From Paragordius varius (taxonomy: Eukaryota; Animalia; Nematomorpha): a stretch of DNA of 64,000 nucleotides. The translations under genes and the position numbers were made by a program. The notes under the pieces were generated by a model that saw only the letters and a program-made list of their open reading frames with translations, made no database searches and was not told the origin of the DNA. The stretch covers positions 3,658,001 to 3,722,000 of the forward strand of contig OZ176053.1 in NCBI GenBank assembly GCA_964247055.1. The letters are read 5' to 3'. Shown here piece by piece: positions 3,001 to 35,031 of the stretch; within the stretch, counting starts at the first letter, position 1, and every line of letters starts with the position of its first letter.

Positions 3001-6000
3001 CCACATTACATCATACCTTAAAAATGTTGATCAAAGAGACCCAGGTCAAACCTCAAATGTCGCAACTTCTAAGGTTATTCCCCCTCATCTTACAACAACA
3101 AGTGGTGGGATAGGGGTCCAATCTATGGCTTACACAGTTTATGAATATATGATGTATTATGGTATTTTGTTTCCTGGTATAAATCGTCGACAAGCCGATT
3201 TGAGTGTCACGTATCTCCTCAAATATCTCGTCAATTTTTGTTTCTTCAAGTTTGGGATTGAGGTTTTAAGTTATTATTATTATTATGTTTATGAAATTTA
3301 TTTTTGTCCTAAAGATTTTTAGAAATAAAATTAACAAGCTTTGTTTGTTAGAACACATATTAACTTTATACATGGGGTATAGATAACTTTGATGAGTATA
3401 ATTGCAACTATTGGACTGAGGTGGGACGCTTGGTCAGTGATATATAGCGTATGGTTGGGTATTTTATTATTTCCATCCCGAAAACAATTAGCTATGATAT
3501 GGCCATTCTATGTCATGTTTTTGATTGTTGTCATACCACTCCAATACCTCTCTACGATTGGTATGCCGCCTGGATTATGTTTGGGTAAATAATATTAAAA
3601 GTTGAAAATAAAATTGAAGAAGCATTTTTTATTGTAAATTATGTTGCAAAATTTTCCAACTTGATAAAACTGATAACCGCAGAGATTTAAACAAGTGGTG
3701 AACCCTTGGTCAATATTAATCATAGTCTAGGGGTTTTCATATATATAGTGTGTATATATTACTATAATATAATTTTATTCCGTTTTACATTAACTAAAAT
3801 AAATAATTGGACTAAATAATATAACTCAGAATACAGCTAAATACTAGCATAATATTTATTTATAGACGTAAGGCTTATAAATTTTTTAAAATTTTATGTA
3901 CACTAAAGTTTTTAAAATATAATTATGATTAATCTTAAATATATATATTAATTTTATTTGTTAATTTAGAATACCCCTGGACGAACTCCATCAAACCTAC
4001 CTTAAGAAATTGGTTGTTTTTACCAGACTTTATCGTCTCACCCAGTAGCTATAAATTATCAAGTATGACTCTAATTTAATTTAATTTTTCATATTACATA
4101 ATAATTTATGTGATTCAATAGTTTTTGAATGACAAAAGTCGACAATTTATATACCAAGTATATATATGTACATTTTTAGCTGATTTCTTTCAACTCTTGT
4201 TTGCTACGTGTCAGTTAATGGTGTTTAAAATTGATTATGGGCCACACTCTGATATGCCTCCATCACCGTATGCTCTTGGGAGCAGTACTGCAACTGCTAA
4301 AGCAAATACTGATGATACCGAGGGTGGTCAAGTTACACCCGATTATGAATCACCACACATTACGAGTTATAATGGTTTACTGGGTGAACCTAAACATCAT
4401 GCCTCTATCTTCACCAAGGGCCTGGAACACTTTAAAAGTTTCTCGACAAACCTTGCCACCAACATAAGGAAGGGCAAAGCAGGAGCTTGGGCTACGCATA
4501 AAAAATCATCGCCCACACTCTTACCTACATCGGCTACCTCGAGAGGTTCACTCGATCAAGGTTTAGATTCTGTACGACGGGTCAGTGGTGGCTTAGGAGG
4601 GTACGTTTTAGATTATAATACTTTCCTAAAGTTTTTTTGTCCATAACATTTTATTAATTTGTCAATGCCATGTTTCTTGATAAGTTTCGGGGATAGTGGG
4701 TTAAAGTTTAAGTAAAGCCTTAAAGATTTTGGTCAAAATGGTTTTGATTAAGGTAGCGTAGCGTTAGGTATAACAGGTTTGGCTATCTCCCCTATTTTTA
4801 ATGTATCTCTCCCATTATGCCGAGATTTATCACCACATTATTTATGTATTAGGAATTATTTGTACAAAACAGGGCAGGGCCTTTAATTTTATTTGAATGC
4901 CTTATGAACATAATTGATTGTTTTTTTGGATATGGCATTTTGATATAAATCATGATTTTGTAGAAAGTGTTTTAATCAAATGAAAATTCAACTGTAAAAT
5001 ATTCTTCAGATTTTGCATTTAACAATTCACATATTTCACAATAATACTAAACTAATATATCATTGATATAAATTAGTATGCTTATTATTAAATATTTATT
5101 CTTATTATATCTATAATCCACCATTTTCTTAATATATTTTAAATTATCCATATGATTTGTGTTATTCACGATTGTGTAAATGTTTCTGGAAATTTAAAAA
5201 TTTTGTTTTAGGAAAAAAATGAATCCTTATAATACAGATAAGGAAGTTAGTTATGTTTAAATGCAGAAAAATTATATTAATTACCCTTTAAAATTTTTGT
5301 GGTTATTACTAGACGATTTATGATTGATAAAAATATATTTTATATCATCATTTGTGTAGAGAACTCAAAAGGACCGAATCAACGCGCAGTAAATCGTTTC
5401 ACTTTTTGTTTGATCGTAAACATTTGCACAGACCATCATTTTTCGGGCGAAGTGCCCCAACCTATTGGGTTCAAGATTATGAGGGTGGAAGTAATCGCGA
5501 AATTTGGAAATTAGAAAATCAAGACATACAAAACCCTATCCCTGATTATGTCACGCACACAAGGTAAGCAAATTTTTATTAAACTTTGCTCATTTTTAGC
5601 TAATTTTTTATCAGAAAATTATTTTTTAATGCATATTTTTTACATATAGCATACATAAGTAAAGCTTTTTGGCATTATTCTAAATTTTCAAAAATATTTT
5701 AGAACTCTGTTGGACAAATTGAAATTTGCCTTTTTCTCCTATTCATATTGGATAACTTTAACCATTATCCTTATTACGGCAACTAATCGTGTAAGCCTAT
5801 TTTGTATGGGCTATTTGATTGCATCCTTCTTTTTTTTGTGGTATGGGAACGAGCTTTTCCTTAAACCCCTTAAAACGATCCAACATTTGTAAGATTTTTA
5901 ATTGTTTACTAATGTACAGTATAGTAATTATTAATTAATTTTCTATATTTATATAGTTGGACTTTTCTGATAGCATACAATTTCTGTGTTATATTCATCA

Positions 6001-9000
6001 AAGCCTTCTTACAGGTATATTTATATTTTTTCAATAATCTTTTTTTTAAATCTTTTTTTCGTATAGGTTATTGGCTGTGTATATATGAAATCGTTGGAGG
6101 GAAATTTATGTTGGTTAGTTCAACTTTTAAGCATTGCATGTTTAAAAGCTGGATTTGGGACATCGCGAGGTATATTTTATAATAAAAAAAGGCATTTTGC
6201 CTAATTTTTAAATAAATACACAAAAGATTATTTATTATTATCACTTTATTCCCCATTTGATTAACTGGAAATCGTTTAATTCATTGGGAGAAGATATTAA
6301 TTTTTTTATTAAAACAAGATTTGAACGTTTCTGAGGAATGTACCGTACCCGTGGAACAGGCTGGAATCCTGTGGGATGGTATTTGTTTTGCATTTCTCAT
6401 TATGCAAAAGCGTATTTTCGGCAGTTTTTATTTTAAACACATCATTACTGAAATTTATGCTCAACAGCTTTTGGCTTCCAGGTTAGATTGATTTATGTAT
6501 ATTGGGTTAAAAATTTACTTTTTAGATATTTACAGTAAAAATTGGAATTATACGGACAAAACGTAATATAAAGACAAATATTTTTTTCTCAAAAGACAAC
6601 CATACTTTTTTAAAACTTAATTTTTATTATATAAATTATATAACTACATTTGTAAATTATATAATTGATTGTTTTACCACTTTATATATCAATTTTTACT
6701 TTGCAGTTTAAAACCATGAGTTATATTTAAAAAATCTTAGATTTAAAAAGTATGGTTGTCTAGAAAAAAATATTTGTCTCTATATATTTACGTTTTGTTC
6801 GTATAATTTCAGTTTTTACTGTAATTTTTGGACTTTTAAACGTTAATTTTTGAACTTATTTCAACTTTTTACTTTTTAGGGGAGCTGAATTGGTTAACCA
6901 AATAAAATGGAAAGAGGTCAACGAACAAGAAAAACGTGAAATCGAAGTTATGCAAAAGATTAAGAAAAAGATGGAACAAATTAAAAACCAGAACCTTAAA
7001 ATGCAAAGGAAACTCACAAGTGAACCTAATGAACATTTTCAAGGTAATAAATTTACATAAATAGGGATACATATATTTATTACAAATTCAAACGTAATAA
7101 TATAAAACGAATATTTAATTTTTTTATATATATAAAAGATTGGAATAACCATTTTAATATAAACACTTTTTTCATATATTACATCTTATTCGAAAGCGCC
7201 AAAAATATCTGAACAAAAATTAAAACAAAACATATCAAATTTTGGTGTTTTGAGCCGATATGTTAAACAAACACTCTATTATTCCAAACCTAATCCACCC
7301 ATCGTTTCATCATCCATACACCCCAGTATTTATCCCAAAAGCCACGGTTTTTATGGTGGTGACGAACAAAACAACAAACCTACAACCATATCAAGATCAA
7401 AATCGATTGATCTTGGAATTATATTTATAGGATTGGAACGAATCACTGAAGAAAATGAAACATCTTTCCGGGAAACTTTAGATTCAAACACTTTTAGCAG
7501 CTTGCATAAAAAACGGTTTCGTAGCCAAAGTCTTGAAGATTTAATACTCGATTCCAATGATATCCCATACCTCAAATGGCAAATGGGGGAAAAATTGTTG
7601 GATATAAGTCTTGATCGAACATCTGACATACTTTCACCACGTACGAAAAAGAAATTATTTAGTTCAACCTTAACTAGTACATCTACAAAGAAAAGATTAG
7701 GATCTTTAATTTCAACAGCTGATTCTAAAGGTTTAAGAAGCATGGCCAAAAAAGCTCATCCGCCATTATCCCGACACCAATGTAATTATCGGTGTTGCTT
7801 GTCCAAAATTTAATCATGAGTGAGAAAAAAATGAAAAATCCTAATTTCATAATGCTTTCAGACATTTGATATTAGGTGTAAATACTTTTTATCTATGCAT
7901 TTTGAAATGATATGGACAAATCATTTTGAAATCGTTAGATAAATTCATGTTCCAATTTATACTCATTCCATGATTAACATTTATCACTGATTAATCCTGC
8001 AATGACATTAGTTTTTTCCAAAAAATACCCCCTTAATATGGGCTACTATTCCCATATAGGGTGTCGTACAATGATGTATAGTTCTTACAACCTATAGTTA
8101 TAGAAAAACTATATGATATTTGTCCTTTGCCTAAAAAATAATGTTCAGTTTTAATTCGGAAAAAACTGGATTTATTCGTCCTTCTGGTTTGTGTATTAGG
8201 TATGTACCTGAAAAAAAATTTCCGCATTGGAATTTTTGTCAAAAGATTTGTGTTATACTTGCTTCGCGATTAGGATTAATTCGTTTGTATTTTTCAGTTT
8301 TCATTTATTTTTGTGCATGTTATGCATGTGTGAATTTCAAACAATTAATTTGTATGCAATAATGATATAATATAATTATTTAATCAATTTAGCTATCCGT
8401 TCTGGCGATTATTACATGTTTGATGATGTTTCCGATGAAGACTCCGATAACGCCCTGGCAGAATTGGAATACAAAGAACCGGAACCACTTGAAGGGGATG
8501 AAGCAAGCACTGGGATAGGGCCAATTGAGGTTTAAAAAATTAACGCGTATATCAAAATATAATGTAAAAACGGTTAATTAATTTTAATAATTTGCATTAT
8601 ATCTCTAATTTTTGGTTGTTATGGAGTTAAATTATTACTTAACTCGAACGATTTTATTCCCTATTAAATCATTTATTTATCGATTATGTTTTGGTTTTGA
8701 AATTGCTAGGTTAGGTATAACTTTATTTAATATTTGATAAAGTAAAAATTATTTTTGTTATAAAAAGTTTAATATATGGGCCAAATTAAAAATTTCACAG
8801 GTTTAAACACCAATCTTCCTATTTTTGTTCTCAATCTAATTATTAATTGATATTTTAGCTCCTGAATGTGGCATTAACCAAGGGTGGTATTAAGGGGGCC
8901 GTTCAAGAGGGTCGTCAACGCGAACAATCCCTAAGCCTTAGTCGCGAGGGTAGTATTGCCTCCACATCAAAGAATGATGAATATATTTTAACTGGTAAGT

Positions 9001-12000
9001 AACACTTTTTAGATAATCCTTTTTTATCTGGAAATAAAATTTTGGTTTCTTTTTTCGATTCGATAAGAACATAATATATTTAGCTTTAAGTAAGAATCAT
9101 ATTTTTCTATTTAAATCAAGTATTACTGATAAATTATATTCCATTTGTATGTAAAATAATAAAATAACCAAATATCATGATAATTTATCATGGTTTTATT
9201 GTGACGCCATTTAATACAACATAGGTGCTGGTACACGACCAACGCATGGTGGTGGAGGTCGCCAGAGTCGTATCAGTATTTTGGAACCGATTCAATCAAG
9301 CGATGATGAGGATGAGCCTGAGATCACTAATGTAATACATTTTGTCCAGTTTTTACCCAATAATTTCTATGTAAAAAAGTTGTTTTTGAATAAAAAAATG
9401 ATGTTTTTGATGAGAAAAAATGTTATTTTTAGCATTTGAATTAAAAGTGTGTTGCTATTGAATTTCAAAAGTAATGTTACTAAAAAAAATTGGTATATCA
9501 TACAGATTTTAGAGTATAATCCTATTTTACAAATATTTATTTAAATAATGCTTTTGTTACTGTTCTAATTTGTAATTACACAATATAACACAGTAAAAAA
9601 ATTATCCCAAATATATATATAATATAGGCAAACCCTCGACAACCTGCCATAGTAACAAGCGCACAGGATACTTCGGAAAGGCAAATAGTATTGTGGTCGA
9701 GGGATCAACCCAACAGAAATATCAATGATGATGGAAATGAAAGACCACCTCCATATAACTCTAATACTGACAACCAAAATATAGATAATGATGTAAACGG
9801 TGAAGATCAAGAAGGCGAAAAAACTGGTTTAATTAATAAATTATGCTTGAAACAGAAATACTTTTTAATTTTGAGGTTTTAAAAAAAAATTTTGTTAAGT
9901 CAGGTCAGGTTAACTTTCATCAAAAGGCAAGAAAAAATTTACCATATTTTATATTTGATATTTTGTTATCTGATTTCAGGATTTAATGACTACTTTTTAA
10001 AATTTTAGTATTGATTTTTCATATCTTATTATAAAATCAGCTTGAGATTGTAAAATTAATTTTGAACCGAACGCAAATGAACATTTTTATTAAAAATCAA
10101 TTTTGGCGTTTTTTAAGAAAAAATTCTACCATCAAAATCAGTGATTAATTTGATTTAATTTTTTACATCTAATTGTATTAAGGTAATGGTATATGTGCCA
10201 AAATTCATGATTTTTTCCATTTTATGCTTCTATTCTTCTATGGGCTATTGGAAAGTGCAACGCAACAATTGAATCGTATTTCACGGGATTATCGGTAAAA
10301 TATATTTTTTATAATCAGATTACTCATTCACGAGATATTTGTTATTTTATTACTAAACGATAAGTTTTTATATGCATCTGTTAAAATTTTAAATTTATTT
10401 TGTAACCATATAATTTACAAATCTTTGCGCAACAATATTATCGATACATAAAATTAAATATATTATCCATTAATATACCTTTAGTTACATAGCTAACATT
10501 CTATCCTATGAAAAAGGACAACGCAAAGAAGAAGAAAGGGTATATATTTGCAAAATCAATTTTTCATTTTATAGATTAATTTTGACTTATATTTTTATTT
10601 TGTTAATTTAGCAACGTCGTATGCAAACTCAAATACCGGAAACAATAAAATCGGTAGAAATACCCATGGACACAAATAGGTTAAGAAAAGATCTCATCTA
10701 ATTTTTAAATTAATAACCAAATATTTTTAATAAAATAATTATCATCAAAGCAGAGGTTCTTCAGAGTTGAAGGTAGCTGATTTGAGATAAGTTTTTATTG
10801 CTGTTTTTTAATTTTTTCTATTTTCCGCATCTTCTATTTTTAATTTGGTCTTATAAAAATAATATTAACCATATTAATTGGAAATATATATAATTTAGAC
10901 TGAGCTTACAAAATGGAACCGAAGAAATGAATGATGATTTGGGTTGGAAAACGCCATATAAAACGTATTTTTTGGAATTAAACAATAAAATATCGCTTTT
11001 CTTATTTACCTTGTTACTATTCATTATATCTTTATGCTTAGATGATATCTTTTATGATAATATTCCTCATCTTCTGTTAATATGTTAGATATGAAACATT
11101 TACTCAAGACGAAACAGCTCAGCTCAAACCTGACCGTAGTATTGTGATCAAATTCCTAACTGCCCTGTATTACGTTTTTATTTCTCGGTCTGAATTAGTT
11201 TGCTATTTTCTAGTCGTGCTCAATATGTTACAAACGGCATCTATACTGGCTATGCCGCCCCCTTTTATGGTCTTTTTATGGGGTTAGAGAAATCTATAAT
11301 AATTTTTTTAGCCAATTTATTTTCATATGTAATTGTTTTGCAACATTAAATAAATCGTTACTTGTTATACATAGATCTCATCTAAATTCAATTTATTTAT
11401 CAATAATCTTTGTGTTTAGGAACATTATCAATCCCAAGACCATCAAAAACGTTTTGGGTCAGCCTTATAACTTATGTTGAGGTAAATATTTTTTCCAACG
11501 ATTTTTAACACATCATTTAATTTCCACATCGATTTTTTATTAGAGATTTATATAAATAAAAAGATCAAATTATCAGGTGACGTAAACCTCAAAGACCAAT
11601 CTTTTTTAAAAACGCAATCCTACTTTTTTTAAACCTTTCTAAATGATTACATTGTGATATGTAATTAAGATAATAATTTTCGCAACCAAAACTTTAGATT
11701 ATTATATAAAAAATATCAACTTTTATAAAAGTATACGAATATCTTTTATAAAAATATATTTGTCTCTTATATAAATTTTTACTGTAATAACAATTATAAA
11801 TTGTTTGTAGGCCGTGGTTATAATCAAATACCTTTTCCAATTTGGATTCTTTCCGTGGGTCGGCCAAGAACGTGCTAAAAATCCCCTTTGGCCACCCCGA
11901 ATCATTGGGATTGAAAAGAAACAACATTATGCCGTATATGATTTGGTACTTTTGTTGGTACTCTTTTTCCATCGCTCTATATTGAAGGTTAGCGAATTTG

Positions 12001-15000
12001 ATCTTTTTTCGGAAAGCGTGTTTATAATAGTTATTATAACTAGATTACGAATGTTTATAATAATTCTTTTCATTTATTACCTCCATTTTTATACAATATG
12101 AATTATTTTTAACATTTTTGGTAAGTATTCGTTTAATAGATACTATTTTTATTAGTTACGGTAAACTATAATTTAAAACCTATAAATATTGTATTGGATT
12201 ATAAACACTTTATATAATGTTGGCATACGAAATATAGAGTTTGGGTCTTTGGAAGGATAACATAAAAGTACGTACCGGATCTAGAGATTATTTCAAAACT
12301 ATGGCTGGTAAGTGTTTGAAATTTGCTAATATACTTTATAACATATATATACCATTTACAGTTCAAATTCACTCTTAACCAATTCATTCACCCTAAAAAT
12401 AATTTATGTGTTTTCGGCTAATATAACTACTCATCATTAATATTAAATATGTCTTGATGGGATAGTCATTATTCTTTCTGTATTATTTTGATTTTGAGCA
12501 AAATTACATTTTTAAAAATATTTAAGTAATTTTTAATCTTAAAAAACACCTGATTTATTTTAGGGTGAATTTAAATTGTTTAAGGGTGATTTTGAACTGT
12601 AAATGGTATATATATATATATATATAAATTATTCTATTATTTAATAGAAGATCAAAATGGGGCTGAAAATACCTCCATTAGTAAGTCAGAAAATACGCCG
12701 ATATTAAAGGATAAAAATATGTTTTCGAATAACGGGAATCAAAATGGGCTAAGACAGCGAAGAAATAACAATTCCAATAATAATATAAATAACAAAATGG
12801 TAAAAATCAAATAATTAATTATCTCATAAAACTTTAATTAATACTTTCATCATTTTTTAAAAAACATTGTTTATATTCTTTTGAATTTGTTAACAATGTA
12901 CTCTGGCCATATAAAAATCGAATTATTTTTTGGTTTAGTAAAAACATATATTTTCATCGGTTAGAAAGATGATTTCTTATGACCATTAATGATTTCATTA
13001 ATAAGCAATCAAACTTATCATTTTTAACCGGTTAATATCTAATTCTATCCTAACCATATCTATCACTTTTTACAAAAATTTAATCATTGACCCCTTTATA
13101 AAAAAAGCAACATTGATTGTACATATTACATATATTGATATTTTTAGGAGCAAATTAATCCAGGTTTTCAATCAGACTCTCCCAGGACAACTAATGTTTC
13201 TGTTGCTCAAACTTCAGTCACCTTATCTTCTTCTAATGCGACGACTCCAACCGATTTAATTAACACATCCACAACAAATCATGGCGTTGCAAATTTAAAT
13301 AGAAACAACAATAATAATAATAACAATAACAATAGTATTAACAGTAATAACACATTATCCATAATGAACGGAGAAGATATAAATAATAATAATACATTAC
13401 AAGGTGATATATCGACAACATCAATGTTACCAAAAAAAGCTCCTCTCCTACTCATGACTTGTGAATTTTCGCATTACTTTAAAACGTTTTGGAATTTTTA
13501 TGACAAAGTTTTACATCCACAGTTCCGTGTAACGGTCGATGTTTATGCGCCCATGTTCCTGTGTGATTTCATAACTTTCCTCATTGTCGTGTTTGGGTAA
13601 TATAAATAATTAGCTAACACAAATATTTTTGCTAATATATAAATTTCATTTTATTTTTTATCAGAGTGCTATATTTTGTAGTTGTTTATCTCTCTATGTT
13701 TTTTTTTCTTGGTAATAATTAGTTTTTAAGATTAAAGGAATCAACAGATTTATGGTATAATTTTAATATTAATTGAATCCAATGGTAATGTGTTTCAACC
13801 GCTACAATATTTAATTTTATTTGTTTAATTTAATTTTTTTTTCTTTACACAATTTCATAAAAAAGTCATTTGTTTAGAGAATTTTTTGTTTAACCAAACT
13901 CGGCATTGTATGATAATTTACCAATTGTGCCTCATTTTACAATTTGTTAATGTATTTTTTTCCATAGATAAGGCTTGATATCTATTACTAAATCTCACAT
14001 AATATTACTTTTTTTTGAATCATGATTATAGATATTCGGCATTTGGTTCAGGCACGCCCGAGGACGGAGATGTTACAAGTTATATAAAACAGGATAAAAT
14101 TCCCATTCCTTTTCTCATAATGTTGGTCGTTCAATTCGCCCTTATTATAGTGGATCGGGCACTTTTTCTCCGTAAAAATTTATTGGGAAAATTAGTCTTT
14201 CAATTCATATTGGTAATCGTTGTACATATTTGGATGTTTTTCCTGCTACCCGCATTCACTGACAATGAATTTTACAATGTAAGTGTGATGTAATTTTGTC
14301 TTTAAATGCATTAATTTATAGTGCAAAAATGGGCGAATTTTCAATTAATTTTTTCTGTACGTAAGATGTATAATTACTTTATTTAACAGTAAGTTGTACA
14401 AAAAATTAATATATTTATAAACAAACTGCTATATTAGATATTTTTGGAGATAATTGTAATATATTTAACATTGTAGAACATACCTGCCAGATTATGGTAT
14501 TTTTCAAAATGTTGCTACTTCCTTCTATCATCTTATCAAATACGGAGTGGTTATCCCACCAGAATTCTTGGGAATTTCCTCACTAAAAAATATAATTATT
14601 CCAACCTTATCCTATTTAAAGGGTATTATATATTTAATATATTTTTCTATATTTATACTAATTTAAAAAATTTGTGCCGGCAACATCACATTACTAAATA
14701 ATGAATGCTACAACGTTTTCCCCTTATTTAATTTTTTGTCCTTAAATTTCCGAAAATATTTTTATGGTAAATTTGGTGCCTTTGATTTTCATACCACGAT
14801 TATAAATTTTCTATACTATATACTTGGGTATTATATGGTTTTTTTTAAATATATATTTGATTCAATAAGCTTTACTATAATTCCATTTTTGTGGGAACTG
14901 CGGGCCTTAATGGATTGGATGTGGACCGATACTTGTATGTCACTCAATTCTTGGTTAATCATGGAGGATATTTATGCCAGCATCTTTTTGTTAAAATGTG

Positions 15001-18000
15001 GCCGGAGAATTGAATCAGTTTACACAATAAGAATGTCTAGAAAATGCGAAATCAAAATACTCAGCAAAACATTGGAATTTTATTGATTAAAAATGAGTTT
15101 TCGTTAGAGATAATGTTAAAAAAACGATTTGTAAATTATAAAACCATTGTTTGCTGAGTTTTTTGATTCGTCAGATAATATGCAGTTCGCTTGTTATTGT
15201 GATTGTCCGATTTATTTGAGTAAAATGAGATGACTTCTTCAAGCTTTGTCCCATAAAAATCTTGATATGATCCATTCATATAAGATTTGTCTCATTAAGA
15301 CCAGATATGTGTAAATTTGGTTAAAGTATAAACCAAATTCGTTTTTGTATATATCTTAGTCATCCATCTTTAAGTATTTGTTTTTGTATTTCTTTTATTT
15401 ATGGAAAAAAATTGTTTCCATAAATTGTTGATTTATATTTGCTTCTTTAGCTCTGCAAATGAGCTAAGTTACCAATATTAATATTATAGATGTTGAGTAC
15501 GTTTTGCTCTTAGTTATTATATAAATTTTTGCACATTTAAACATTTTGTTATATTGAACCATGCAAAATGTTTAAATATGCGTTAATATGTGGTATTTGT
15601 CTTTTTTTTGTGTGTGTAATTGAATCACACTTGTTACCTTTTGTGGTGTATAACAATAGATTTAGTTTTATTCCATTCCTATGGGAACTAAGGACCATAA
15701 TGGATTGGATGTGGACTGATACAACGTTAACCATGTTTTATTGGATTAAACTTGAGGATATATATGCAAACATATTTGTCCTCAAGTGTTGGCGTCGTTC
15801 AGAAGTGGTATGTTACCCCCATTGCTTTTTTCCATATTTTTGAAACGATTAAAGTTAAGGCAAAATTTTGTGTTTTAAGATTTTTTGCACGCATTTTTTA
15901 ATTTATTTGTGTTGCACGAAATTGTAATATATTTTGAGAAATTTTTTGTTTCTTTATAACGATATATATAATATATATAACATAGGATTATCCAACACCC
16001 CGAGGTGTTAAAAAACCCTCATGTATGAAATACTTATTGGGTGGCTCCCTTTTATTCGTCCTTATAATTATTATTTGGTTTCCACTTGTACTGTTTGCTC
16101 TTACCAATCAAGTTGGATCCAAAAATTTGCCATACGATTGTACCATGCAAATTAGTATTGGGGGATATGTGGTATGATTTTAGCGAAATATAAAAAAACT
16201 TATGAAGAAAACTATATTTTTGATCCTTGATTTTTTCCTATGTAACCTAAGTGATTATGTTTGCGAAATGTATAATTGACTGTGTTAAAAAATTATAAAT
16301 ATCTTATTTCAAGGCCCAAAACGATAGGTTGTACTCCTTCAAAAAATCTGGGTTTAAAAAAGATGTGTTTTCCACTTTTTTTCAATTTTATATGAATTCT
16401 TGATGTATAAGGGAAGTAAGATACTATAATTTTCAAATTTATGTATTTTATGGTTGTAGCCTCTGTTTCGTATGAGCGCACGGAACCAATTTATCAAACC
16501 CTTCACAGAAAATGAATATCGGTTATTAATGGAGAGGAATCTGAAAAATAAGGTATAATCTTGTGATATTTTCTCTTATATATTGGTTTTTTTTTCGAAT
16601 CGTAACTTAAAAAACTTATTTTCCTTTAGGCAGCACAAGTATTCCTAAGCAACTATGAAGTGGGAAATGTGCTGGAAATAAGTCTTTTAAACAATTCAAC
16701 TGATATCTGGACAATAAGCCCTCCAAGTTTAAACACTCTCAAAGAAGTTTTATTAAGCAATAACACTGTCGAAATGCGTATTATGTGGAGTTTTACCCGG
16801 TTTTTCAAATACATTTCTTATATTGTAGCAATATTTTTTATTTCCTCTTAATTATTAATTACATATGTATATTATATAATATAATCATTATTAACCGATA
16901 TTTTTACATTAGTTCTACTTCAAGCAAATTAGTAGAACCTACTGTCTCTGATGAAAACATTGTTAACCTGGAGCCAGGAACGAAATCACGGGCCGAATTT
17001 GCTGAAATGTTAAGAGGCAATTTTTCAAAACCAATGTATGTCACATTTTCATTTATTTATACATAAAATTTTATTTTTCCATATTTTTTGTTAAATTTTT
17101 TGTGATTAATAGTTTAATACCCCGAGCATTTCCTAAATATGTGAGGATACCCGCAAAAGATAAGCCTAGTTATGTTCGACCTTTAGTTCCAAGTAATTAG
17201 TTTTGCCTAAAAAATATCCATTCATTTTTATTTTTAATGTATTTTTGATATACTAAACGAATTTTTTTACAATAAAATAATTTCATATTTTCTTACATAC
17301 CAACATTTTTATAGGAAAAAATATTAGTTTATTTACTATACTTATTTTTTTGATTTTAACAGATGGTGTGATAAGTTTCCGTGACATAACAATTAAATTA
17401 CAACACCAAATATTTGAGGGTACACGAGTGCATTGGTGGGAAGTTAGAGAAATCCCAATGGAAACACCCGGATCTCTCAAATATTACAAGCCTGGTTTCA
17501 TTACTATAATTGGGTTTTCGGATTTGGTGTTTTACGGAGCCTTTTCATTCTTTGCTCAATACGGGTAATTTAATTTTAAAATGCGCCTATTAAATATATA
17601 CAAAAAGCTTCATACCAAACGTATTTTAATTTTTTTAGTTTAACGTCTAATTTAAGATTTTATGGTGTAGTCATTAACTTTTTAATCAAGGTTATATACA
17701 TTTAAAAAATTTTAACTGTTTATTACTTGACATTTATACTATATTAACGGACATTAAATAATTAAATAGTTATTTCATTCAAATAATTTTTTTTCATAAA
17801 ATTTTACAGTATCATTGGTATGTATGTGTCCTTGGTGCTTGTTATTGGTCGCTTTGTGAGATCGTTTGTTAGCGGTTTGGATAGTCGCATTATGTTTGAT
17901 GAATTACCCAACGTTGATCGTGTCCTACAACTATGCCTCGATATCTATCTGGTGAGGGAGAGCGGAGAATTCAAGCTTGAAGAGGAATTATTCGCAAAAC

Positions 18001-18666: not shown

Positions 18667-19986
18667 TTAAAGTTTAAATTTTTCTTGTGCCTTGTCAACA
18701 ACGACCTTGGATATGGCGAGTGAGGATGTGGCCGCCGGTGAAGGGGCATTACGGACATGAAGTGTCCGTTCACCCAATTTCCCTTTTCCGCTATCAAAGA
18801 CGAAATCGTCGACTAAATCACCTTTTTCATCTAAAGCTTGCGCTCTAACCCCAGAAGGACCTGGACTTACATCAGCCACCGAAATTTCCGGTATATAACG
18901 TTGCAAAGCCTTAAGTTTTGCCCTAACAAAAAATGATTCATACATTTCACGCATTCCAGGTGCCATATATTTGAAAGAAAGTTTACGGAACCCGGAAAAC
19001 GTCATGTAATCCCAAATATCTTTGATATTCATGTCGGAGAAGGAATAACCTTCACGGCTAAAAGCTAGCACGGCATTTGGACCAAGCCAGACACTCCCAT
19101 CCATACGAGGTGTAAAATGCACTCCAAGGAAAGGAAACCGCGGATCAGGCACTGGATATATATTACCTTTAACTAAGTGTCGTTTTTCGGGCGATAAAAG
19201 CATGTATTCTCCCCTGAAAGGGACTATTTTGGGAACATTAGAACAACCGGATAATTTTGCGATTTGATCGGAATACAAACCGGCGCAAGTAATAACAAAT
19301 TTTGATTTAAAATGGTTGTTTGCCTGTTGGTTTGCATCATGAGTTATTATCTCAAGAGGGTGAGAATCATTATCGTTATAGGCAAATGATGTTACCTTAT
19401 TGTTCAAAAATATTTTTCCACCAGCTTTTTCAAAATTTTCCCCGTATTTCAAACTAACTCTCCGCCAATCTACTATACCAGTATTTGGTGAATGTAATGC
19501 ACGAAGACCTTTGCAGTAAGGTTCAATTTTGTGAATATCTTTTCCTTCTATAATCGCTAAATCTTTAACATTATTTTTGGTTCCGCGCTCATAAAGATCA
19601 TCCAATAATTTCAATTCTTTTTCAGTTACCGCAACAATTAATTTACCACATTTGTTGTAAGGAATACCATTTTTATCACAAAAATCATAAGCCATGTTCA
19701 TACCTTGAACGCATAACTTTGCCTTTAAAGATCCGGGTTTATAATATACACCAGCATGAATAACACCACTATTGTGCCCGCTTTGATGGGAGGCCAATTC
19801 CTTCTCCTTTTCTACAACTGCAATTTTAAGCGAGGGAAATCTCGTTATCATTTCTTGTGCGGTTGCTAAACCCACAATCCCACCACCAACTATTGTTAAA
19901 TCATAATGATCGTTATTAGTCGCAAACATTCGCAAAGAGAAATGCAAAGCCCCTTTAAGGGGAAAAAATTTGGATACCAACTTCAT
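18667..19986 (-). CDS. L2HGDH: L-2-hydroxyglutarate dehydrogenase, mitochondrial, single exon
   Basis: 439-aa ORF with a presequence-like N-terminus, FAD motif VGGGIVG, HQSGHNSGVIHAGVYYKPGSLKAKLC, PDPRFPFLGVHFTPRMDG and C-terminal HVRNAPSPAATSSLAI. Confidence 0.96.
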   Translation of the reverse strand: MKLVSKFFPLKGALHFSLRMFATNNDHYDLTIVGGGIVGLATAQEMITRFPSLKIAVVEKEKELASHQSGHNSGVIHAGVYYKPGSLKAKLCVQGMNMAYDFCDKNGIPYNKCGKLIVAVTEKELKLLDDLYERGTKNNVKDLAIIEGKDIHKIEPYCKGLRALHSPNTGIVDWRRVSLKYGENFEKAGGKIFLNNKVTSFAYNDNDSHPLEIITHDANQQANNHFKSKFVITCAGLYSDQIAKLSGCSNVPKIVPFRGEYMLLSPEKRHLVKGNIYPVPDPRFPFLGVHFTPRMDGSVWLGPNAVLAFSREGYSFSDMNIKDIWDYMTFSGFRKLSFKYMAPGMREMYESFFVRAKLKALQRYIPEISVADVSPGPSGVRAQALDEKGDLVDDFVFDSGKGKLGERTLHVRNAPSPAATSSLAISKVVVDKAQEKFKL

Positions 19987-20850
19987 GTCATCTTAAATAG
20001 CACCACGTAACTAAGCCATATGTATAAAATATATTTTCCTTATCTGTTATATGGTTTTTTATAGTATCGATTTAAAGTATAAAAATTAATATAAGGAAGT
20101 ACGTCTAATTGATAAGTAAATTAAAAAATAACAGTACATTATCTTTGATTTTTATGAGAATGCGATATCGGGTATTTTATATCGCAAGGGTTTAAAAATA
20201 TGATAAATACTTTGCTCAAAGATATTACTAATCCAATAATTTTTTGTAGAAAAGTCTCCCTTCTATGCTCTTTTAAATCCTATTATATAATCAAAATGAT
20301 GCTGCCATATTTCATGCATTTTTAGATGTTGCTGTATTTATGCCGTTAAGATTTTAATTGCTTATATTCTTCAGTAAGATGTGGTCGAATTTTCAAAGTT
20401 ATTTGATCTAACATATAATATAGGATGAATTTAATGCAAACAATTAAATAAAAATTAGCTTAAACTCATGTCGACCGTAACCAGCATGCTTTAACATATT
20501 TTCTTAGGGTTCAAATAAATGGCGAAATCAGGATTTGCATTTTTCGATGACACATAATCATGAAAAAATAAAAAATTTATTAAGTATTGCAATATTTGTG
20601 ATTATTTTAAGACAACTATCCCTTTTAGACTGTGAAAGACTCGGTCTTTATATTTTACTAATATTTCACAAATATTTTAGAATATATTATATGTATGAAT
20701 TTTCGAACGGTGCAATAACGACATAGTTTTTCACTGAAGATAACGATTTATACTAGGGTCTTGTTTTGTACCACAATTATATTTAAGTTATTAAATTAGG
20801 ATTAACATACATTATCATATATTTTGATAAAAGGGTTATATGTTTTAGAG

Positions 20851-27700: not shown

Positions 27701-29872
27701 CTGGTAGAGATGGCAGACCTGGAAACGATGGGCCAAAAGTATGAAACATTTTAAATCTGATTAGTTCATTTCATTTATAATGTTTAGATATGATAAAAGC
27801 AATTTCCTCATGCTAAAATTAAACTATTTGTTTAGGGTCCGCCTGGGTCCCCAGGAATTGATGGTACACCTGGTAAACCAGGTATTGACGGGAAAGATGG
27901 TGTGGCTGGTATTCCTGGGACCCCTGGAAAAGATGGACAACCAAATTTTACGCCTGGACCACCGGTATGTTCATTAAAAATAAGCTTTATACCAAAATAT
28001 TCCAACTTACATATATCATGTTTTATTTTTTACAAAGTTTATATCTGATATTACAAATATATAAATTTGAAAAATCCCATATAGGGTATTCAAGGCCAGC
28101 CCGGATTCCCAGGTCTTCCGGGAGAAGATGGGCGGCCAGGAGAACTAGGAGAGGCTGGAGACGCGGGCGAAAAAGGATTTTCTGGGCCACCTGGCATCGA
28201 TGGAGCCCCCGGATCACCTGGTCAGGACGGTGAGCCTGGAAACCGAGGTCCAACTGGTGTCAAAGGTCACCCAGGGCGATCTGGAGAAGATGGTATATAA
28301 TTTTTTTTTCGATATCATTAACGTTTTTTTTATTACCAAATTTTTTTTTGAAAATATATATAAACTGACATTTATAACTAATATCGAATATCAGGGAGCT
28401 TTACACCTTATTTTATTACCACAAATATCGGCTATTTTATTTACCATAAACGTGTGCTATAGAAAATAAGTTTAAAACTGGTGGTTAATTTACATTTTAT
28501 TTTGTTTTAGGACCACCAGGGCAACAAGGTCCACAAGGACATCAAGGTCCGCAAGGGCCCGAAGGTGAACAAGGTGCCTCTGGACCTCCAGGGAATCCTG
28601 GTGAGCCTGGAAAGCCTGGTAATGCCGGTGTCTGTCAAGAGATAACTTGCCAAGGTATTTACAGCAAATTTTCTGAAATTAATTAACAATCATAGTCAAA
28701 GTTTTAATTAAATTCTACTAGTCTTTATTCGGATTAGGGTTGAAGCGGAACCATTTTTTTAAAAGAAAACCGCATTTTCAAACGCTTCCAAAATATGTTT
28801 GTTTCTAATTTTCATACAAATTAATCTTATATTTTGATAATAATTTTTAATTTATATGAATATTAATATTCAAAGAAAAAAACATAAAATAATTTGCATT
28901 TTTGCAGTGTATTTAAATAAGGTTATGTGTTAATATAATAATGGGAAAACTAGAACAATTTTACCAAACATTGGATCCCAAAAAAAGTTTGGTTTTTATA
29001 AAGAATTTAGTAGAACCGGAACCATACCAAAGACAAAATTACAATTTTGGTCTCATTCCTTGGTTTACAATGGACATCTTGTAAAAATATTTGAAAAATA
29101 GGATTGTATACTAGCCTTTGTATTTATCTCATTAGTTATGGTAACAAAATTTCGGCACATTTTTGTATATATTCGGTTAAATGTCTTTGACAAAATTTAA
29201 TATATGTACTCTGAAAAAGAATCCTCGGATTTTATTTTCGAGTGTTTCTGAATTTACATTTTTTCAATTTATATTTATATGGTCTAATAAATAACAGCTC
29301 AAGCCGTAACAAACGAATGTAGTGGTATCGTTTTCACTCGATGGGGACAAACAACTTGTCCATCAAATGCCATTATTGTGTACTCGGGTAAGGTTGTTGG
29401 TGGAAGTAACAAAGATACTGGAGGCGGTTTTAATTACTTATGTCTCCCCAATCGTATTCAGGGCAATAACTTTGGTATAACCGGTCGAACCGTTTCCAAA
29501 ATCTATGGTGCTCAATTCCATTTCTATCCTCAGGGCGGTCCGTTTGCCAGTACGGCTGCAGATTTACATTTGGCGGCTTGTTCGGTGTGTTTAAGGCGTG
29601 GCCATTGTGTTTTCGTTATGTTAGCAGCTTTGACCCAATGTCCCCCGGGTTGGTTGGAGGAATACAAGGGCTACCTCATGTCCATAGACAATGAAAAGGC
29701 CCGAGCCGAATATATTTGTGTGGATGAAACTCCTGAAGGATTTGACATTGGAGGTGAACAACACTACCATGGCGCATCAGGATTGTGGCCAGTTGAATCC
29801 AAGTGTGGAATTCTCCCTTGCAATACTTACTATGATGGTCGTGAACTTCCTTGCATAGTTTGCAGTCGTTAA
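24759..29872 (+). CDS. Type II membrane / cuticle-type collagen with about 150 Gly-X-Y triplets and a C-terminal short-chain collagen C4 (spongin/NC1-related) domain; 13 exons
   Basis: Exons: 24759-25064, 25165-25348, 25466-25614, 25811-25936, 26104-26229, 26360-26488, 26646-26771, 27170-27295, 27613-27738, 27836-27964, 28085-28292, 28511-28654, 29298-29872. Features in order: TM helix [21 protein letters not shown], furin site RSKR, DCCIQG-Gly-[10 protein letters not shown], then [10 protein letters not shown]...YSGKVVGG...[10 protein letters not shown]...[19 protein letters not shown]. Confidence 0.93.
28736..29030. mobile_element. Transposon remnant with GAACC/AAACCG subterminal motifs, in the last collagen intron
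   Basis: Starts TAGGGTTGAAGCGGAACC. Related GGTTCC-rich stretches occur at about 53665-53730 (opposite orientation) and 57330-57480. Confidence 0.35.
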
Positions 29873-31876: not shown

Positions 31877-33606
31877 TCATTGATAATATTTTTCTAAACA
31901 TTTGGATTTGAATGATACCGGTTTTCCTGAAACAGATCACAAAGCCAGAATTTTCCTTTTTTATAAATATATAGAATAATATCGTTAAGCATGAAAATTG
32001 GTACCGTTCGAAACTTAGATTTATTCGAGGTTTTTATACCCCCTGGGCAACACAAAAAATATGTCATGTAAAATTGCAAAAAAACCTCATCTAAATTTTT
32101 AGCCGTCAAATATTTTTTTATATCATTCGCTAAAATACTGCGGTATATTAAAGTTAAGTAACTTTATAATGCTTTTGATTATATTTTGGCATTATTTCAA
32201 ACATTATTTACAAGCTAATTGATTTAGGATCTAAGAGCCATTTTTAATATTTAGCCTTTCACTTAAAAAACTGCAAAGAACAGCATTTAAATTTGATTTC
32301 AATATAAAATTATAATTGTGATTATTATGTAGCAACAATATCTTTCAAAATTAAACTCTTTAAACTCAAAACTCTGTGACAAAAAAACACTCCATTAGGT
32401 ATTCATCAATGAACTTAGAAGATGAGAGCATTGAACGAGACGTTTCCCATCAAATTGTTTAAAATTTATATTTTACAGAAGGGGAAAACAGAAGAAGCTG
32501 CTGTTTTATATGCAAGTTAGTCGATACTCGATCATTCCAGTTTTAGAACAATAGGATTTTATTGGAAAAAACTGTCTTAAGCTACTTCATCTTATATTAG
32601 AAATAAAGGGCCTAACACATGGTGAAAATTGGTGAAAATTTAGATAAAACAGCTATATAGCTAAGAGGCAAAAAATTATATCAAGAACTATGCAAAATTC
32701 CGATGGCAATGCAACATAGACAAATTATTGTAAATTAAAATAATTATAGAATCAGCTTGCCTCGTAAAATTACATATTCTATGACATGAAATGCCCTAAT
32801 AAGGAGGTGTAAGATTTAGGTATTTTGTATTTAAGTAATAAGTTATTTAAAGATTTTTATATGTTTTATTATATTCATATGTGATATAATGTAAAATTAC
32901 AAATCTAATATTTTTTTGATGTTAAATTGGTTAACTATCTTTTTCAAGTCTCACATAGTATTAAATTATTGGGTGTACATTTTCATAGGCAAAAACCAAT
33001 AAATAATAAGTATGGGAAAGGTAAAAAGTAGTACAACATTTTATATTTACTTAGTACCTACGTAAAAGTTGTATTAATAGTATGGAATAGATAGTATGGT
33101 GTGTGTGATTTATTGTGGTGCTATATATTATTATGACATAGATACTTTGTGAATTTGGACGAACGTCATAGAACCCCCTTTTAATACCTATATTTTATGA
33201 TGTGTGGTTTGATGGGGGAAGGTGGAATCAATCTTAATTATTTTTTAAAATAAAAATTCCAAACATACTGCCTACACCATATTGATGGACCCATCATAGT
33301 CATATCTTAGCAATTAAAAACTTATGTGGCTAAAACTTATTTATTCCAAATTTAATGTGGATTTCCAAAGAAAATGAACGCAAATCAAAGCAAATTCGAT
33401 ATGCATTATGACGAAAGAAATATGATAATTAGTTTTTACCAAATGGACAAAGAGATGTATCTTATACAATTAATAAAATTTTAATTAATAAATGATAGAG
33501 TACCACCTATTATTCTCGTGGAGAACTTCATATAAATAATGCATGTTCCCAGGGTATATAAAGGAATGAATCCTCTTTATAAAAAAAAGTATAAAAAATT
33601 TGAACG

Positions 33607-35031
33607 ATGAATTTCTTTGAAATTTATATTCTGCCAATTTTCATATTCTTAGGAATTTTGGGCAACTTATGTTATTTCATATGTACGTTAAAAATTCGGA
33701 AAAGACCTCACTTTTACATTTACATATATTGTATCATGATTGCGGATATGTTATCCATATTTCATCTAATATGTTGGCCCCTAACCTTTTTTCGCGTAGG
33801 GAACCGAGTTATGCATTACAAATTTTATCTCATTTACATTGGCAAAATACAACCGTGGTTTATGGAACTGAGTGCAGCTTCTGTCAATTGGACCACTGCA
33901 GTGCTGAGCGTGGATCGTTGGTTTGCCATAAGCAAACCCCATCTGTATCAACAATGGTACAGAAAAGATAAGATTGTTAAAATATGTATCGGGATTGTGG
34001 TTGTCAACATGTTGATTGCCATTCCATATTCACAAATAAGAGAGCTTGATTCCTCCTCCATCACTAACGATTTCGGGGCAAAAGAAATGAAGGCGCGGAG
34101 ATTCCTAGATTTTATCACCCAAAAAGATTTGATACATAATAGTGTGAGTAAATCTACGCCTTTAGTTTACCCGGTATGGCCAACTGTTACACACCCAAGC
34201 GTTGGGACTAAAACAAAATTAGAAACATTAGTTAGCCACTCAAAGGAATTGGAGATAATTTTAGCCATTGAAGAATTAGATAAATTTAGCAAGTACTATG
34301 ATACCATCATAGTTACTATTAATTACTTGATTCCCATCTTAATGTGTATCGTCTGTAATATACTTATTGTTTACCCACCTATAAATGACAAATTATTTAA
34401 TATGTTTGAAACGATTCAATCAAAACAGCCCAATAAGATTATGGACACTCAAACAACTCCGGCGATTGCTGTAACAAAATCATCCAGGTTATGTCCCTTG
34501 ATGAAATTTAATTTGGGTGCAAAACAATTTATGCAAAAGCTTAACCAAAAAATTAGTTGTACCAATGATTGTGAAATATTTTTTTGTGAAATGTGTCAAA
34601 TGCCAACTACGAACCCACCAACAGCCCATATAAATCAATGTAATAATGATTCAAATTTGACCATAAATGCAATGAGTCAAAATAACAAATGTTTTAATGA
34701 AAAAAATGCGTTAACTAGCGTTGGATCCGCGCGATACAGGAGTCGAATGATTAAGCGCCGAATAAAAAGTTTAATAACTGCTCAAAGCATTCACATTTTT
34801 CTAACCAATATGCCTTTCATTATATTCGTTTACTTTACTGGATATTTTTACTGCTCTGACGCCCGTTCTAAATACTGGTTAGCTCAGCTCGTGGTCCATC
34901 ATTTGAAACACATGAATCCCTTGCTTGGTGTTTATGTTAACTTTTTATTTGATAAAAATGTGAGATTTATATTAAATCATATTAGGTTTCATCGTATAAT
35001 ACCACAACATCATACTTGTGAAACGGCATAA
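33607..35031 (+). CDS. Class A (rhodopsin-like) GPCR, peptide-receptor-like, single exon
   Basis: 474-aa ORF with 7 hydrophobic segments: LGILGN (TM1), IADML (TM2), LSVDRWFAISKP (TM3), LIPILM (TM5), TNMPF (TM6), MNPLLGVY (TM7). ECL2 and ICL3 are long. Confidence 0.88.
   Translation: MNFFEIYILPIFIFLGILGNLCYFICTLKIRKRPHFYIYIYCIMIADMLSIFHLICWPLTFFRVGNRVMHYKFYLIYIGKIQPWFMELSAASVNWTTAVLSVDRWFAISKPHLYQQWYRKDKIVKICIGIVVVNMLIAIPYSQIRELDSSSITNDFGAKEMKARRFLDFITQKDLIHNSVSKSTPLVYPVWPTVTHPSVGTKTKLETLVSHSKELEIILAIEELDKFSKYYDTIIVTINYLIPILMCIVCNILIVYPPINDKLFNMFETIQSKQPNKIMDTQTTPAIAVTKSSRLCPLMKFNLGAKQFMQKLNQKISCTNDCEIFFCEMCQMPTTNPPTAHINQCNNDSNLTINAMSQNNKCFNEKNALTSVGSARYRSRMIKRRIKSLITAQSIHIFLTNMPFIIFVYFTGYFYCSDARSKYWLAQLVVHHLKHMNPLLGVYVNFLFDKNVRFILNHIRFHRIIPQHHTCETA

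Follow-up and report, generated by a model that had tools for sequence, protein, structure and literature searches.

A candidate 195-codon cassette exon between the beam and the plug motif of the Piezo gene of Paragordius varius

Introduction

The segment of Piezo channels that runs from the beam to the lateral plug and its latch is known to be spliced naturally and to tolerate variation (PMC8924262, PMC9256749, PMC12951647). Does the single Piezo gene of the hairworm Paragordius varius carry an additional coding exon in this segment, and is that exon used in only part of the transcripts? We addressed this in a window of 64,000 nucleotides (nt) of contig OZ176053.1, in which all positions below are counted. 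Its DNA is very AT-rich, and most of a Piezo gene lies on its plus strand; one intron of this gene contains a long stop-free frame and, within it, a candidate exon of 195 codons (7197-7781). In Piezo proteins the beam is followed by a 44-residue linker that constitutes the lateral plug (encoded in PIEZO2 by the alternatively spliced exon 33), and then by the latch, IDR3 and the clasp (PMC8924262). In the plug-and-latch model, leverage of the beam unplugs three lateral portals (PMC9256749).

We find it most likely that 7197-7781 is translated as an exon of Piezo, as judged from the length of the frame, the pattern of polymorphism, the lack of an early ATG and the retention of the exon by an ab initio model. 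We infer from the splice sites and their phases that it is a cassette included in part of the transcripts, and we give this reading of a genuine coding cassette exon a probability of roughly 0.45.

Results

The host gene was identified by Pfam matches to plus-strand open frames between 775 and 18059, which comprised Piezo_TM1-24 (E = 1.6e-105), Piezo_TM25-28, Piezo_THU9_anchor (1.1e-17) and Piezo_cap (5.8e-46). Blade, anchor and cap domains thus follow one another in order on one strand, which identifies the gene as Piezo. The Piezo_cap domain was found at one locus in the 110.5-Mb assembly, indicating a single Piezo gene.

The candidate lies on the strand of Piezo, within a Piezo intron, and is bounded by an AG and a GT in the phase of both neighbours (Table 1). 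Its length is divisible by three, both of its ends are in phase 1, and the donor at 7043 and the acceptor at 8393, which would be joined if it were skipped, are in phase 1 as well. With 585 nt and phases that match those of the neighbours, the reading frame is therefore kept on inclusion and on skipping alike. The predicted protein reads ...HFQ-A-PKISEQ... and ...SRHQ-S-IRSGDYY at the two joints when the candidate is included, and ...HFQ-A-IRSGDYY when it is skipped. An initial annotation of this DNA had described a stop-free frame rich in Ser, Lys and Arg, with phase-1 splice sites matching both neighbours, and its coordinates, phases and composition were borne out. The most frequent residues are Ser (31), Leu (21), Lys (20), Ile (16), Thr (14) and Arg (11), and the G+C content is 34.7%, against 16% and 27.5% in the flanking introns. 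The encoded peptide is basic (31 Lys and Arg, 19 Asp and Glu) and rich in Ser, Lys and Thr; 67% of its residues favour disorder, and no hydrophobic stretch of membrane-spanning length was found in its 195 codons. It contains four RxxS sites, a number that did not differ significantly from that in shuffles (P = 0.07). The candidate is present in a single copy in the genome.

The same annotation had read the end of the candidate as an echo of the end of the upstream exon. The two ends have in common only CAA (a Gln codon) followed by GTAAT (the donor consensus), and their local alignment scored at or below the shuffle mean. We rejected a duplication of the exon end, as similarity of DNA and protein was no greater than in shuffles.

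The frame that holds the candidate is long for its surroundings. None of 5,000 shuffles of its own letters reached 216 codons (maximum 152), nor did any of 2,000 shuffles of the whole intron (maximum 153), and it is the fifth longest open frame of the 64-kb window when both strands are counted in all reading frames. The other frames in the window with at least 193 codons belong to a seven-transmembrane (7TM) receptor, L2HGDH (Pfam DAO), a large Piezo exon, an intermediate filament gene and a 14-3-3 gene, and to 29291-29869, for which no Pfam match was found. Such a length, far beyond chance for AT-rich intron DNA, argues against a frame that lies outside the mature Piezo mRNA, whether as a recently retired exon, as an exon of a gene nested on the same strand or as what is left of captured or mobile DNA. 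A transposon origin was rejected, since the genome has only one copy of the frame and a transposon domain is absent from the Pfam matches.

Polymorphism provided a second line of evidence. Four public sequencing runs cover the stretch; all are of DNA, with introns covered like exons, and the material is variable, with differences of roughly 2-3%. Among the 16 best-supported single-nucleotide polymorphisms (SNPs) listed inside the exon, which were drawn from a longer list, nine are synonymous in the proposed frame, compared with three and four in the two other sense frames. When changes of the same types were placed at random on matching bases, 4.7 on average were synonymous, and P(9 or more) was 0.018, a result of moderate strength. 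None of the 16 changes creates a stop. The test behaves properly, because all three SNPs listed for the undoubted upstream exon (6880-7043) are synonymous. Polymorphisms of 1-nt insertion or deletion number none in the 585-nt candidate and six in the 611-nt intron b, a suggestive contrast among the best-supported rows. An open frame on the opposite strand (7354-7755) has its third codon positions at the same bases as the sense frame and could thus produce a similar pattern. This frame, for which no Pfam match was found, was ruled out as the constrained frame by a common variant, 7559 G>C, that makes a TGA in it; C is the only base in the single contig of run X2 at this site and accounts for about half of the depth in run X1. 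The synonymous excess, the lack of stops and the broken antisense frame provide moderate support for constraint in the proposed frame. For DNA outside the mature mRNA, a synonymous excess and a frame with no stop and no listed insertion or deletion would have to coexist with a diversity of about 2-3%.

Between 5000 and 10000, runs X1-X3 and X5 showed high nucleotide diversity, in blocks with 2-5% differences beside identical blocks, both within and between the pooled runs. Run X5, which carries the label of another organism, was as similar in introns as in exons and is thus uninformative on conservation; its similarity suggests one species complex or mislabelling, not two distant taxa.

The position of start codons bears on how the frame could be translated. 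Because the first 128 codons of the exon contain no in-frame ATG, translation of the frame needs joining to an upstream coding exon, and the lack of an early ATG of its own likewise speaks against a nested gene. The in-frame ATG that had been noted near 7583 is present, and it had been proposed to make the frame an alternative first exon: a promoter inside the intron would give a short Piezo that starts at this ATG and lacks transmembrane helical units (THU) 1-7 and the beam. The ATG has a good context, and short PEZO-1 isoforms without the blade are known in C. elegans (PMC12951647). The first ATG of such a transcript would, however, be the wrong one, as the exon has five off-frame ATGs before 7583, and the transcript would need to start within about 6 nt of 7583. 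It would also leave the 128 open codons upstream unexplained, where 8 of the 12 listed SNPs are synonymous. We therefore consider an alternative first exon highly improbable.

As an ab initio approach we used a simple exon-chain model that scores codons by log-odds from known genes of the window, requires GT..AG introns and keeps track of phase; splice-site matrices were added to it later. The model returned exactly 7197-7781. It kept this exon at an intron penalty of 14 nats, at which spurious exons in 8012-8351 vanish.

We then located the insert in the channel. The upstream exon aligns to residues 1320-1367, the end of the beam, of the solved Piezo chain 9w7x_B of the PDB (2551 residues), and to positions 190-236 of Pfam PF15917 (Piezo_TM25-28). 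The downstream exon gave no match to solved Piezo chains with queries of 45 or 22 residues. The plug motif was mapped by eye against the sequence of human PIEZO1 printed in PMC12524981, with IRSGDYYMFDD and the acidic run of the worm set beside human IHSGDYFLFESDSEEEEE. The human protein reads ...LASRGFALYN...RIRAKQEK...(linker)...HATVIHSGDYFLFESDSEEEEE... (PMC12524981). Counted by eye, the spacing from LASR to I(R/H)SGDY(Y/F) is 89 residues in human PIEZO1, 55 in the worm protein with the candidate skipped and 250 with it included. In mouse Piezo1 we take the plug to span about residues 1382-1405.

By this mapping the putative insert is in the linker from beam to plug, just N-terminal to the plug motif. 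The initial annotation had placed it at the junction of plug and latch; the insert falls instead between the end of the beam and I(R/H)SGDY(Y/F), and would move plug and latch together away from the beam, not the plug from the latch. Its proposal of a frame-preserving cassette stands as the best reading, but not the suggestion that the plug is pushed away from the latch, as the insert precedes the plug motif. Nor is the candidate itself a plug exon, since the motif lies in the next exon, 8393-8529. That exon is 137 nt long, with phase 1 at its start and phase 0 at its end, and hence cannot be skipped without a frameshift.

The strength of the splice sites bears on whether the exon would be used occasionally or constantly. 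Matrices were built from the 30 other predicted introns of Piezo, with the candidate excluded. The candidate acceptor, cttattcgaaag/C (the slash marks the exon boundary), scores 1.6 and is the weakest of 31, the other 30 having a median of 5.6 and a minimum of 1.9. The donor, AAT/gtaatt, scores 3.7 and falls in the lowest sixth, with lower scores in only 4 of the 30 other donors. The sites joined by skipping are among the strongest of the gene, with 6.3 for the donor at 7043 and 8.6 for the acceptor at 8393, the strongest acceptor of all. Weak sites flanked by strong ones, equal phases at both ends and a skipped product of canonical form are typical of cassette exons, and it is for this combination that we prefer the cassette reading.

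The candidate acceptor is of the AAG type, whereas 26 of the 30 others are TAG. The rare AAG acceptors of the gene stand at 6319, 7197 and 14870 (also at 10183), and 14870 is the first of two alternative anchor exons, the other lying at 15660. An AAG acceptor is not disqualifying, because it is also found at the conserved exon 6319 and at the anchor exon 14870. Among the 30 other acceptors only one is CAG, and the strong bias to T at position -3 is unusual for an animal. Inside the frame there are in-phase acceptors stronger than that at 7197 (1.6), namely 7431 (2.9) and 7701 (4.0), which could give shorter versions of the exon.

Much of this evidence would fit an exon that is always included, so that Piezo would have a long, lineage-specific loop of 195 residues between beam and plug and no switch between isoforms. 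The evidence for coding from frame length, SNPs and the exon-chain model applies equally to such an exon, the AAG acceptor recurs at the apparently ordinary conserved exon 6319, and the gene has other long, unconserved loop exons (4180-4630 and 13148-13596). Constant inclusion is harder to reconcile with the weakest acceptor in the gene lying between very strong sites on either side, with a skipped form that is canonical (55 residues against 89 in human) and with an exon that is symmetric and a multiple of three. We judge a constitutive exon to be possible but somewhat unlikely.

We searched for relatives of the insert in several collections. The candidate had no match in Pfam or the PDB, its best score against the ESM Atlas was 0.78, below the useful level, and it showed no similarity to the plug motif or to any Piezo. 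The introns around it had no match in Rfam at E <= 0.1. The lack of a Gordionus match among the representative proteins searched weakly suggests that the annotated Piezo of Gordionus has no equivalent insert or that the insert has diverged beyond recognition, with the limit that a Gordionus Piezo is unconfirmed in the protein library searched. A single-sequence AlphaFold prediction of the candidate alone had a mean predicted local distance difference test (pLDDT) score of 34.7, which fits disorder and is otherwise uninformative. The insert is probably disordered, and the exon looks specific to a species group or lineage.

Several observations weigh against a spliced and translated exon. Among arbitrary open frames of the window with at least 45 codons, 19% likewise begin close to a phase-1 AG and end close to a phase-1 GT, and the match of splice phases is for that reason weak evidence when taken alone. 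Codon usage did not discriminate, with log-odds per codon of 0.098 in the sense frame and 0.121 in one antisense frame. The candidate acceptor beats no more than 30% of all AGs in the gene region, and the SNP count draws on best-supported sites. A search of 1.84 billion representative proteins gave no homologue; its two matches, to repeat proteins (SAXO and Kelch/DUF11), are due to chance, because internal repetition inflates a short match. A length-limited word search gave none either. Five possible RNA runs under the same species label contained no words of the stretch, and even the flanking constitutive exons were missing from them. The lack of a matched homologue, the weak acceptor, the uninformative codon usage and the moderate SNP evidence (P = 0.018) would all suit a frame that is left out of the mature Piezo mRNA. 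Set against these are the length of the frame, its single copy and lack of a transposon or other domain, and the constraint described above, and we regard that explanation as doubtful. A coding exon of Piezo, included as a cassette, remains our preferred reading.

Table 1. Positions of the candidate exon and of the features around it. A slash marks the boundary between exon and intron.
Feature	Position	Strand	Length	Description
Upstream Piezo exon	6880-7043	+		End of beam helix; phase-1 donor CAAG/gtaataaa, leaves one base (G) of split codon; donor score 6.3
Intron a (if candidate used)	7044-7196	+	153 nt	16% G+C; frame of upstream exon meets a stop 5 codons in
Whole stop-free frame holding candidate	7163-7810	+	216 codons	
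Candidate cassette exon	7197-7781	+	585 nt (195 codons)	Starts and ends in phase 1; gaaag/CG..., whole codons from 7199, ends CAAT/gtaatt
Possible shorter exon version	7431-7781	+	351 nt (117 codons)	In-phase TAG acceptor tatttatag/GA; acceptor score 2.9
First in-frame ATG of open frame	7583-7585	+		Context caaATGg; off-frame ATGs before it at 7260, 7353, 7455, 7557 and 7576
Antisense open frame	7354-7755	-	134 codons	Third codon positions coincide with those of sense frame; rejected as a gene
Intron b	7782-8392	+	611 nt	27.5% G+C
Downstream Piezo exon with plug motif	8393-8529	+	137 nt	tttag/CT ATC CGT...; A-IRSGDYYMFDD, then acidic run; acceptor score 8.6

The surroundings of the exon yielded further observations. 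The intron before exon 6880 contains an element resembling a miniature inverted-repeat transposable element (MITE; 6530-6824), with 37-nt terminal inverted repeats (6530-6566 and 6788-6824) that are 92% complementary, and with inner inverted repeats too. Summed contig depth over this element was 10^5 to 10^6 in three runs, compared with about 10^2 to 10^3 elsewhere; a depth so far above the surroundings indicates an extremely abundant genomic repeat family. All joints between read contigs listed for the region lie inside this repeat (6530-6830), and none joins exon to exon, the runs being of DNA.

Tail-to-tail with Piezo, about 600 nt from its end, lies L2HGDH (18670-19992, minus strand), a single-exon gene with an uninterrupted frame of 441 codons. 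Its closest match is from Gordionus sp. m RMFG-2023 (70% identity), with the remaining animals at 62% or less, which marks the genome as that of a nematomorph outside the genus Gordionus. The Gordionus orthologue has 493 residues spread over 7.2 kb, and must have introns; its neighbours are a proteasome gene on one side and a BTB gene on the other, rather than Piezo. The difference suggests that introns were lost, or that the gene is a copy resembling a retrogene, and that a rearrangement took place as well. A single open frame of 475 codons (33604-35028) has a weak match to the rhodopsin family of 7TM receptors (E = 2.2e-7) and looks like an intronless, fast-evolving gene for a G-protein-coupled receptor.

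Discussion

Inclusion of the exon would separate the C-terminal end of the beam from the IRSGDYY motif by a further 195 residues, which are basic, rich in Ser, Lys and Thr, and probably disordered. A much longer and more flexible tether would probably either slacken the coupling of beam to plug or add a loop or surface beside the portal for regulation, phosphorylation or docking; in either case the acidic plug, the latch, the anchor and the pore would be left intact. We infer this effect on gating from the position and composition of the insert alone. There is precedent for the sensitivity of the region, as deletion of the nearby disordered region IDR3 in PIEZO2 displaces the plug and raises unitary conductance (PMC8924262). 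A more elaborate proposal is that a phosphorylatable tether of 195 residues is switched in and out between beam and plug, so that the plug is freed from beam leverage or tied to it again, and, with the two alternative anchor exons, yields four channel types from one locus; we think this rather unlikely.

Three known systems invite comparison. In the mammalian variant Piezo1.1 (Geng et al. 2020), splicing removes the plug exon, which alters the seating of the lateral plug and with it conductance and mechanosensitivity (PMC9256749, PMC12951647). The likeness is one of natural splicing in the beam-plug-latch segment, predicted here from genomic sequence; the difference is that the mammal removes the exon that codes for the plug, whereas the worm would add an exon of 195 codons before the plug motif, its own 137-nt plug exon being unskippable in frame. 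Like exon 33 and the IDR exons of PIEZO2 (PMC8924262), the worm insert would be an intracellular, probably disordered tether beside the plug. It has, however, no sequence similarity to exon 33, is much longer at 195 residues and lies on the side of the plug that faces the beam, with an effect on gating that is conjectural. Finally, pezo-1 of C. elegans, whose short isoforms arise from internal starts (PMC12951647), is likewise a single invertebrate Piezo gene, diversified by splicing and alternative starts. In the hairworm, the five off-frame ATGs and the open, apparently constrained codons that precede the in-frame ATG disfavour an internal start.

What the locus means depends on how the exon is used. 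An exon that is never spliced in would be no more than a curiosity in the evolution of introns, and one that is always included would be just one more lineage-specific disordered loop. If it is a cassette, it would constitute a natural experiment on the plug-and-latch model, in which the same channel is made with 55 or 250 residues between LASR and IRSGDYY, and which directly tests whether leverage of the beam must pass through a short linker for the lateral portals to open. Invertebrates that have only one Piezo gene would then vary the same gating hot-spot that is spliced in mammals, by insertion instead of deletion.

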